A stretch of 64,000 bases of DNA from positions 1-64,000 of the forward strand of contig NIVC01001645.1 in the NCBI GenBank assembly GCA_002269645.1, written 5' to 3'. Below are positions 18,048 to 21,000 of the stretch, piece after piece. How positions within the stretch are numbered: position 1 is the stretch's first letter; each line of letters starts with the position of its first letter. The notes beneath the pieces are model-generated. The model did no database searches. It was not told the origin of the DNA and saw only the letters and a list, made by a program, of their open reading frames with translations. The stretch is from Macrostomum lignano. Lineage: Eukaryota. A program made the translations under genes and the position numbers.

Positions 18048-21000
18048 ATGGTAGAGCCGGTAAAGCTAGCGAGTTCAAGCAGCAATACGGCGCAGGGACT
18101 TTCGGCTCGTAGTCAGCCAAAAGCAAAACCACAGTTTTATTTAGTAATGAGCGAGAAATTTTCCTGGTTGGAATTTCACCAAGAGTTGAAGTGTGCCGGC
18201 CTCACCAAAAAGAGGGCCGCCTTTCAAACCCGGATTGGCGAGCTGGTGGAAGGCGTCGCAGCCGCCGTGGTTGGCATCAGCGGCGAGTCCTACTACGACT
18301 GGATGATGACGGGCAGCTTCGTGGAAGGCTGGGGCAATAATCTGTTCAGGCTGGACGGCGTCACCGGCGTAGACTCCGACATCGATTGGAGCCAAGTTGT
18401 CAAGCACAAGGTGTACCACCTGCGCAGAACCTGCCACTCTGTGGTTGACTGCATCAATAGGAAAGACTACGAGTTGAAAAATGGGCACATTGTTGTGAAG
18501 AACAGCAGTGAGTGTTGCATTGGATTGCATTGTATATGAAATCAATAATTGTGTTTTGATTTGACCGGGCAAACGCTCTATGCTTCATTTGTATGCAGCT
18601 CACAGTGCTAGGGGACCTAGGGGTATACATGTACTATCACTGAAGGAACTGGGGATACTCACTGAAGGACCTTGGGGATGCTCACTGAAGGACCTTGAGG
18701 ATGCTCACTGAAAGACCTTGAGGATGCTCACTGAAGGACCTTGAGGATGCTCACTGAAAGACCTTGAGGATGCTCACTGAAGGACCTTGGGGATGCTCAC
18801 TGAAGGACCTTGAGGATGCTCACTGAAGGACCTTGGGGATGCTCACTGAGGGACCTTGGGGACCTACGCTCTGAAGGACTCGATCCTTTGTGGTCCATAA
18901 AACAAGCGGAATTCCGATCTCGCAAAATGACCTCCCCTCGGCTGTCAGGTCAGCAGCCGGCATTCGACACGAAGCGTCACGGACTGCGCCCCGACACGGA
19001 CGAGTGTCACGCCTATCCGTGCTGCTCCTACCCGGCCACTGTGCTGGACGATGATCAAGATGAAGTCAACACTGACAGATATCCAGTATGCGATAAATTT
19101 CAACAGATTATTAAGACGCAGTTTGACAACGAGAATCCGATCGAAGATGTGCACTTTGTTCGGGCCAGCGTGCCAGGCGAGGTGAACCAGCTGCGCCTGA
19201 GCTGCACTAGGCAGGAGCGCTTCATAATGAGTCAGCTAAGCACAGTTCAAGGACAGCTGTTCACTGTGCTCAAATATCTATTCAAAACTAAGGAGGAGTA
19301 AGTATTGATATTTCGTTCGATACATTGCCTGCATTAGTGTCTGTCTGTCTGTCTGTCTGTCTGTCTGTCTGTCTGTCTGTCTGTCTGTCTGTCTGTCTGT
19401 CTGTCTGTCTGTCTGTCTGTCTGTCTGTCTGTCTGTCTGTCTGTCTGTCTGTCTGTCTGTCTGTCTGTCTGTCTGTCTCTCTGTCTGTCTGTCTGTCTGT
19501 CTGTCTGTCTGTCTGTCTGTCTGTCTGTCTGTCTGTCTGTCTGTCTGTCTGTCTGTCTGTCTGTCCGTCTGTCTGTCTGTCTGTCTGTCTGTCTGTCTGT
19601 CTGTCTGTCTGTCTGTCTGTCTGTCTGTCTGTCTGTCTGTCTGTCTGTCTGTCTGTCTGTCTGTCTGTCTGTCTGTCTGTCTGTCTGTCTGTCTGTCTGT
19701 CTGTCTGTCTGTCTGTCTGTCTGTCTGTCTGTCTGTCTGTCTGTCTGTCTATTAGATGAATGTTTTAATGATGATCTGTTGCAATCGCAGCGAACGCAAC
19801 CCCAAGTCGGAGAAGAAGATCATCGAGAGCGTGAAATCCTACCATGCAAAGACCTTGTTAATGAAGTTGCTGCGCGACCGGGACAGCTGGCCAGAAAACG
19901 GGCATGACGATGACGTAGAGGAAGATGAAGAGGCATCAAAGAGGCTGGAGCGACTGGTCTGGCGCGGGCTCGGCTTTCTGTTGCGATCGATCACAACTAA
20001 CCTTCAAGCTGCGGAGGCTGGCGAGGAGCCAAGCGGTGGGTGTCCCAATACAGACTAAGTCTGCTTCACTGCACTGCTCACCTGATCACTGCTTACCTGA
20101 AAATCTCCTCGATTTCAGGCGATTCGAAGGAACCACCACAGTCTCCATCTCGGCAGGCTTCAGTCGCCTCCAGCAGCGCGTCCACGAAGAGCTCGAACTC
20201 GAAGGTTCCGCGAGTACTGGACCATGCACTGCTGAAGGACTGCGGTCTCTACTTGAAGCCAAAAAAGCCAAAAGAGGCAACTAAAAGCAGCAAGTCGTCT
20301 ATTCTGTCTTTTATTTTTCGATCGCCGCAGGAGCAGCCGAATAAGGCGATATCTGCGATAGAGGCTCACGCTAGCGCTCTTGAGGAGATGAAGGAGGACC
20401 TGCTAGGTCTGATCGGCAAGCGGGGAGACATGGACGATGTGCTCGCTGAGACGCCTGGAATTCTGTGGGAGAGAGGTTCAAGCGCAGTCAGTGATTTGAA
20501 CCGAGAGCTGAAGAAGCTGAACGAGCCGGAGCTGAAAATGGTTCTGGAAAAGTTCGAAAAACGAACTCAGAGTGAGATTGAAAGCATGAGCCAGAGTAAG
20601 GACACAAGTCAGGGTCAGGGCGCTAGCCGTAGCCAGGGAGAGGACACAAGTCAGGGCCAGGGCGCTAGCCATAGCCAGAGTGAGGACCCAAGTCAGGGCC
20701 AGGGCGCTAGCCATAGCCAGAGTGAGGACACAAGTCAGGGCCAGGGCGCTAGCCGTAGCCAGAGTGAGGACCCAAGTCAGGGCCAGGGCGCTAGCCGTAG
20801 CCAGAGCCTGACTCGGAGTGAAAGTGAAAATGACATGAGACAAAGAGAAGAGAAGCTGCGCAAGAAAATCGCGAATCTGTATGGAAAACTCGGCGATACC
20901 TACAAGCTATACGACGTTCTAAAAGACTATCAGACCCGAGTGACGAGTACTTCGGACGAAAGAAAAAAGCACGGCAAGAAAGAGGATGTCATCGGAGATG

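Follow-up and report, generated by a model that had tools for sequence, protein, structure and literature searches.

The usual view is that flatworms have lost cGAS and STING (PMC4117786; for Schmidtea, PMC13563047), and Li et al. 2023 (PMC9980059) state that in most platyhelminths Mab21-like proteins are the only ones present. The exception is Macrostomum lignano, with a radiation of cGLR-like enzymes that have conserved active sites. This radiation has been published before, together with its ankyrin fusions and representative sequences: in Table S3, Li et al. include five M. lignano cGLRs (PAA93208.1, PAA68676.1, PAA45980.1, PAA57558.1 and PAA86972.1) cloned for a biochemical screen, and their Table S2 gives ankyrin (Ank_2) fusions for three of the five. 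Here we analyze a 64,000-nucleotide stretch of contig NIVC01001645.1 (assembly GCA_002269645.1, positions 1 to 64,000, forward strand; hereafter the window), in which an original prediction, made from the sequence alone, had placed a catalytically intact-looking cGAS-like (cGLR/Mab-21) nucleotidyltransferase (NTase) of a probable flatworm. The host is indeed a flatworm, M. lignano. With a probability of roughly 0.6, we conclude that the window carries an intact four-exon gene for a long-branch member of the M. lignano cGLR/Mab-21 family, and that this protein would use the cGAS-type mechanism of its relatives.

The four exons join into 3378 nt and a single frame of 1125 codons, with GT-AG splice sites throughout and introns in phases 1, 2 and 1. 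As had been claimed, the exons are phase-matched and no one open reading frame (ORF) spans the gene. In tblastn searches against the window, exon 1 and exon 2 match adjacent segments of dozens of M. lignano paralogues (18165-18515 in the exon 1 region); in the paralogue P0007 (PAA62074.1), for example, aa 557-659 align to exon 1 and aa 663-753 to exon 2. The P0007 locus, in the same assembly, contains a GT-AG intron in phase 1, placed one codon ahead of a conserved QPA and identical in position and phase to intron 1 of the window gene, and lacks two of the window gene's three introns. The UniProt record A0A1I8J3X3 (P0001) has identical exon 1/2 and exon 3/4 junctions. Read from the sequence, the exon 2/3 junction is the sole canonical, phase-compatible option that keeps the family-invariant K262 and K266; it is forced, because the exon 2 frame stops at 19299-19301, the only GT past the K266 codon is at 19298 and the only phase-compatible AG is at 19789-19790. 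Chance alone would not be expected to leave 775 codons open in exon 4.

All of the motifs on which the prediction was built are present in the spliced product: TGSF (aa 88-91), DSDID (aa 109-113), PDTDECHAYPC (aa 168-178), QLRLS...E (aa 234-243), LKYL (aa 261-264), SYHAKTLL (aa 286-293) and a W (aa 303). The proposed span of 18048-20300 was right at its start and short at its end, as position 20300 is still within exon 4: the boundary of the Mab-21 domain is near aa 410-420 (about nt 20330), and a further ~700 residues of ORF follow, up to 22442.

By BLASTP, the predicted protein matches the five M. lignano cGLRs of Li et al. with 69-141 bits and 30-35% identity over aa ~23-340, and other paralogues with up to 150 bits. 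Profile comparisons by hhalign used a reference of 12 non-flatworm cGLR/cGAS sequences, 11 from Table S3 of Li et al. plus human cGAS 157-522 (the human sequence in our alignments was confirmed identical to PDB 4LEW). From the third catalytic acid to the end of the C-lobe, the predicted protein alone matches this reference at 91.9% (E 7e-7). From the third acid onward, a six-sequence alignment that includes it (A1) reaches 99.4% (E 1e-21), and a larger alignment of 45 full-length family domains reaches 99.6% (E 7e-24). The N-lobe alone is clearly the weaker link (81%, E 1.2e-5), although its GS and DxD motifs align in register. Against the PDB, the A1 profile gave 41 matches at E<=10, all of them cGAS, cGLR or MAB21; the best is cGLR1 (8GJY, 5e-8), and mouse cGAS scores 1e-5. 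No OAS or poly(A) polymerase chain is among the 41, nor does the predicted protein have such a match in Pfam. All six A1 members match Mab-21_C (PF20266; best 8.6e-13), the predicted protein at aa 257-300, and none of the paralogues scanned matches PF03281. The proposed assignment to cGAS-like NTases is therefore borne out by profile and profile-profile matches to cGAS, cGLR and MAB21 only. On this sequence evidence, we regard a Mab-21/cGLR identity with a putatively intact active site as well supported.

The active-site residues are conserved, in agreement with the original claim of a GS loop and three carboxylates. In a joint MAFFT alignment, T88-G89-S90 occupies the columns of human cGAS T211-G212-S213, and the carboxylates D111, D113 and D171 those of E225, D227 and D319. 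Similarly, R236, S238, T240 and E243 share columns with R376, S378, S380 and E383, K262 with K414, S286-Y287 with S435-Y436, and K290 with K439. The predicted protein keeps every one of these catalytic and nucleotide-contact residues. The GS/D/D/D set is near-invariant in the family (complete in 41 of the 45 full-length domains, at an overall identity of only ~30-40%), and R236, S238, E243, K262, Y287 and K290 are 98-100% conserved across the same 45 domains. Such conservation at low overall identity points to selection on catalysis. The spacing also agrees with the cGLR pattern of Li et al., [QT]GS-X8-20-[DE]x[DE]-X50-90-[DE] (PMC9980059): 20 residues lie between S90 and D111, and 55 between W114 and T170, both within its limits, in the contexts M87-T88-G89-S90 and D111-I112-D113-W114.

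An exhaustive phmmer search with P0001 recovered 67 further clusters (50% identity) at E<=1e-3, 31 of them at E<=1e-10. Twenty-nine clusters were sampled, and all 28 that carry an organism name are from M. lignano. Ankyrin repeats were found in eight of nine relatives scanned, seven of which also match Mab-21_C. Two relatives, P0002 (aa 14-432 and 761-1172) and P0003 (aa 117-533 and 830-997), have two cGLR-like domains per polypeptide, a layout reminiscent of the OAS2/OAS3-like multi-domain fusions to which Li et al. refer. The suggestion that the locus is a candidate for an undescribed system is thus not supported, since five M. lignano cGLRs that are 30-35% identical, and ankyrin fusions for three of them, were already in Tables S3 and S2 of that study.

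The predicted protein shares the NTase and helix bundle of the other M. lignano cGLRs (the five of Li et al., and P0004, P0007 and P0010) over ~400 profile positions. Common motifs are GSxxEGWGNxL...DG...SDID, QPA, D..A..CC.YP, HxVRA, LR.S...E, TxQGQ.F..K, LK(S/T)YHAK and H(F)F..D..LY.K. It is only 30-37% identical to these enzymes, and it differs from them in its acidic and Ser-rich insertions in the C-lobe and in the ~450 tandem-repeat-rich residues that intervene between the NTase and a C-terminal region related to that of the family. Whereas most of the relatives scanned are Ank-cGLR fusions, the window gene has neither ankyrin repeats nor a close paralogue. Specifically, Pfam finds no Ank domain in the product, and tblastn of the ankyrin regions of four paralogues against the whole window gave nothing better than E 0.48; no hidden upstream ankyrin exons were found within the window.

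Outside flatworms, bivalve cGLRs are the best matches among the outgroups tested with a hidden Markov model of the family (52-78 bits, against 19.5 bits for human cGAS), led by Crassostrea gigas EKC35826 (78 bits), with C. virginica XP_022288656 and Mizuhopecten XP_021366311 (all from Table S3 of Li et al.). Shared with these are TGSxxEG...SDxDxM, (H)GP/QPA, D...WP, WR.SF..E, SY..KT and CPN(Y/F)F. The bivalve proteins have a far longer stretch between DxD and the third acid, where the flatworm N-lobe has only 57 residues, and in the flatworm proteins the loop from GS to DxD is longer by a 9-residue insertion. With HMMER, similarity between the two groups is detected only from the third acid onward, and the N-lobe is linked by profile-profile comparison alone (E ~1e-5). 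In human and mouse cGAS and cGLR1 (4LEW, 4K8V, 8GJY), the catalytic and nucleotide-contact residues share columns with those of the predicted protein, and the C-lobe motifs (W)RLS(F)S..E, LKYL, SYH.KT and ..YF.P..NLF are recognisable in it. The zinc thumb that cGAS has inserted after the RLSxS helix and ahead of LKYL is absent (an alignment gap), and the core is acidic where that of cGAS is basic. Five residues of exons 1-2, in the shortened N-lobe (H124, C129, H147, C179 and H222), are conserved to 85% or more in the M. lignano family and present in the predicted protein; they could form a family-specific metal site that replaces the missing zinc thumb. MAB21L1 and MAB21L2 (PDB 5EOG) belong to the same superfamily and match the family profile weakly (E 0.05). 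Mab21L1/2/3 have no predicted functional active site (Li et al., Figure 1 legend), whereas the predicted protein keeps the full GS/D/D/D set.

By analogy with the family, we predict that the first ~410 residues form a bilobed NTase, with G89-S90 and the putative metal-binding D111, D113 and D171 in the N-lobe, and a C-lobe helix bundle with the nucleotide-contact equivalents R236, S238, T240, E243, K262, S286, Y287 and K290. Ligand binding would switch on an otherwise inactive enzyme, and two Mg2+ ions coordinated by the three carboxylates would then enable the conversion of two nucleoside triphosphates to a cyclic dinucleotide or a related messenger, which a downstream receptor would read. 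Between the enzyme and the family-related C-terminal region lie tandem-repeat, low-complexity inserts. Catalysis, product, ligand dependence and an immune role are thus attributed to this protein from its relatives.

A number of observations weigh against this reading. The predicted protein scores 13.1 bits (E 0.11) on PF20266, below the cutoff of 24.1, so its Pfam membership rests on transitive and profile-profile evidence; it has no PF03281 match in Pfam, and phmmer of the spliced protein against the PDB gave no match. A single-sequence AlphaFold2 (AF2) model of P0001 was unusable for fold comparison, with a mean pLDDT (predicted local distance difference test score) of 37. The strict regular expression of Li et al., which requires hydrophobic residues around the third acid (h[DE]h), is not matched, because this acid lies in T170-D171-E172. 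In the M. lignano entries PAA93208.1 and PAA68676.1 the same position reads Q-D-T (PMC9980059), and we therefore infer that Li et al. curated beyond the regular expression and that the deviation is shared by the clade. The NTase core is mildly acidic (isoelectric point ~5.6-6.3, against 9.1 for human cGAS), and so gives no hint of a basic groove for nucleic acid. The protein is divergent, as the original prediction had it: its branch is the longest in the family, its best identity to any member is 36% (the nearest-neighbour median for other members is 58%), it agrees with the family at 42 of 49 conserved positions (family median 47), and the C-lobe motif HFF is changed to HAL. The Note column of Table S3, which names at least one characterised enzyme (Sp-cGLR1, '09.'), is empty in rows 89-93, which hold the M. 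lignano five, and Macrostomum is absent from the main text of Li et al. and M. lignano from their species table (PMC9980059). Finally, STING has been reported as lost in flatworms (PMC4117786, PMC13563047).

Divergence of this degree could mean that the gene is a decaying or neofunctionalised paralogue that no longer makes a messenger; it would then be a pseudoenzyme or scaffold, or a young pseudogene with an open reading frame. We consider this unlikely, though it deserves serious attention. In addition to the long branch and the third-lowest match to family-conserved positions, five of the seven losses at such positions fall in the C-terminal half (changes there include G283S, F294M, the W317 column and HFF to HAL), acidic and Ser-rich insertions interrupt the C-lobe, tandem repeats are expanding in a coding exon, and a frame shift in exon 2 of the second copy, P0001, may be real. 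Against decay, all seven losses lie outside the active site and every catalytic and nucleotide-contact position is kept, 1125 codons remain open over four exons with canonical splice sites, and three other family members are at or below the window gene on conserved positions. The deviations of P0001 would be explained equally well by indels in an older long-read assembly. OAS, MAB21L1 and other NTases of the fold family have a common GS/DxD/D site, and the protein may be an active NTase with a chemistry or role other than cGAS-type immune signalling by cyclic dinucleotides, such as synthesis of linear 2'-5' oligonucleotides (as in OAS), some other nucleotidyl transfer, or a non-immune developmental function like that of MAB21L1/2. 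The acidic core, with no indication of a nucleic-acid ligand, would fit such a role, as would the reported absence of STING from other flatworms, and P0003 has a faint, sub-threshold match to a poly(A)-polymerase palm domain. However, the PDB matches are exclusively cGAS, cGLR or MAB21, with cGLR1 and cGAS far ahead of MAB21L1 (5e-8 and 1e-5 versus 0.05), the nearest non-flatworm relatives sampled are bivalve cGLRs, and a lineage-specific radiation of this size is the pattern of immune receptor families described for bivalves and corals (Li et al. 2023). We therefore judge another chemistry distinctly improbable.

A more ambitious version of the cGLR reading is that the protein is an active, ankyrin-less cGLR in a STING-independent cyclic-nucleotide pathway, with its repeat-rich C-terminal half as a built-in sensor or effector module new among cGLRs; this we regard as a long shot. 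Least credible by far is that there is no gene, and that the motifs and splice sites arose by chance in non-coding or repeat DNA. The region is rich in microsatellites and tandem repeats, which can create long spurious ORFs, but the proposed exons coincide exactly with matches of 110-150 bits to dozens of paralogues, intron 1 is conserved in position and phase, and P0001 shares the junctions, so we consider the idea refuted. Overall, an intact gene for a divergent cGLR, with a mechanism presumably like that of its family, remains the explanation we favor.

The gene is an unrecognised, mis-annotated member of the M. lignano cGLR family. The sole match in a word-indexed protein search was P0001, an M. 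lignano protein of 451 aa, and a profile of the six sequences in the same search again returned P0001 only. This reflects a limit of the index rather than rarity, because the exhaustive search gave 67 more clusters. P0001 is near-identical to the predicted protein in exons 1, 3 and 4 and ends before the first coding repeat. Where it reads 'ALCSGQR' it follows window exon 2 in a shifted frame (19151-19297), leaving out ~50 residues, the RLSxS..E helix among them, and it also lacks 11 residues of exon 4 (20295-20330). These deviations reflect either indels from assembly of the older genome or damage to a second copy. The entry is named 'Bromo domain-containing protein', a label that is not supported by Pfam, which finds no bromodomain. 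Neither P0001 nor the exon-4 ORF has a record as a called gene, and the exact sequence of the spliced model was not found in the protein collection. The gene is of use for annotation correction. It adds an unusually divergent member to the family and no new class of system, and it may serve as an outlier for asking which family features are essential. The questions of ligand, product and receptor are family-wide and have already been raised in the literature. Also reported from M. lignano are at least six Mx proteins and a sequence among RIG-I-like receptor homologues (PMC11789081, PMC8476169).

Coordinates of the gene and of other features of the window are collected below. The 15 nt between 18033 and the ATG are in frame with it, and the AG just upstream may serve as an acceptor, either for trans-splicing or for an upstream exon. 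In M. lignano the spliced leader has ATG as its last three nucleotides, and trans-splicing here (18031-18047) could add five N-terminal residues. In exon 4, the last C-lobe motif is the counterpart of CMPHFF.D..LYFK in the family and of ENYFIPEFNLF in cGAS. For the C-terminal 263 aa, no homologues outside the family were found in the word-indexed search and none within it by phmmer. A profile of the family C-terminal region, run against this one target, weakly matches residues 938-1006 (13.3 bits, independent E 2.7e-6) to the paralogue region that follows the NTase domain. A single-sequence AF2 model of the 263 aa was unusable (pLDDT 38).

Table 1. Features of the cGLR-like gene and its surroundings (window positions; phases are those of the introns).
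Feature	Position	Strand	Description
Neighbour	2971-3567	+	resembles an ordinary host gene
12-bp tandem repeat	16803-17522		perfect, CAGGATCGGGAT x 60, 100% matches; ~500 bp upstream of gene start
5' leader	18033-18047	+	directly after AG at 18031-18032; P0001 begins exactly at 18033 (LNLNK-M; tblastn)
Exon 1	18048-18507	+	ATG start, donor GTGAGT, end phase 1; aa 1-153 plus 1 nt; N-terminal helix and NTase core strand-loop; T88-G89-S90 at 18309-18317, D111-I112-D113 at 18378-18386
Intron 1	18508-18948	+	GTGAGT...CAG, phase 1
23-bp tandem repeat	18637-18862		within intron 1; 9.9 copies
Exon 2	18949-19297	+	acceptor ...gtcag, donor GTAAGT, end phase 2; aa 154-270; third acid D171 (18999-19001), SYPA motif, VHFVRA strand, LKYLFK helix; LRLSCTRQE motif (19191-19217), counterpart of cGAS WRLSFSHIE
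Intron 2	19298-19790	+	GTAAGT...CAG, phase 2
(TGTC)n = (TCTG)n microsatellite	19338-19750		nearly all of intron 2; 103 copies
Exon 3	19791-20035	+	acceptor ...cgcag, donor GTGGGT, end phase 1; aa 270-352; KSYHAK (S286-K290 at 19837-19851; cGAS S435-Y436...K439), acidic insertion, C-lobe helix
Intron 3	20036-20118	+	GTGGGT...CAG, phase 1, 83 nt
Exon 4	20119-22442	+	acceptor ...ttcag, stop TAA
Exon 4, start	20119-20330	+	Ser-rich insertion, then last Mab-21 C-lobe motif
Last C-lobe motif	20217-20258	+	LDHALLKDCGLYLK, aa 385-398
Exon 4, middle	20331-21650	+	predicted helical stretches broken by two in-frame tandem arrays
Array 1	20589-20806	+	42 bp x 5.2, SQGQGASRSQSED units
Array 2	21095-21649	+	24 bp x 23, STTGAAEG units
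Exon 4, end	21651-22442	+	C-terminal 263 aa and stop codon
Residues 938-1006	21876-22082	+	weak match to paralogue region after NTase domain
ArfGAP ORF	23632-25653	-	3' third encodes ArfGAP (E 2e-31) and PH domain
19-bp tandem repeat	24444-25643		rest of ArfGAP ORF; x 63
(TGTC)n = (TCTG)n array	27255-30943		3.7 kb, 922 copies; 5 kb downstream of gene
Neighbour	35135-36989	-	resembles an ordinary host gene
Retroelement ORF	39601-41490	-	629 aa; reverse transcriptase and RNase H domains
Neighbour	46146-47666	+	resembles an ordinary host gene

We found no family matches outside the gene region in the window by tblastn, and no second cGLR or obvious immune gene cluster around the gene. The upstream 12-bp repeat creates spurious ORFs of 250-290 aa, and the downstream (TGTC)n array, of the same unit as the microsatellite in intron 2, accounts for an extreme AT skew there and for three overlapping ORFs of >1100 aa. 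The ArfGAP and PH domains indicate that their part of the minus-strand ORF is a real exon; the rest of that ORF is unlikely to be coding. A retroelement insertion is indicated by the 629-aa ORF, which encodes reverse transcriptase and RNase H, and the neighbouring genes include a gamma-butyrobetaine hydroxylase/TauD-like dioxygenase, a weak seven-transmembrane receptor-like ORF and an exon of an RRM protein.

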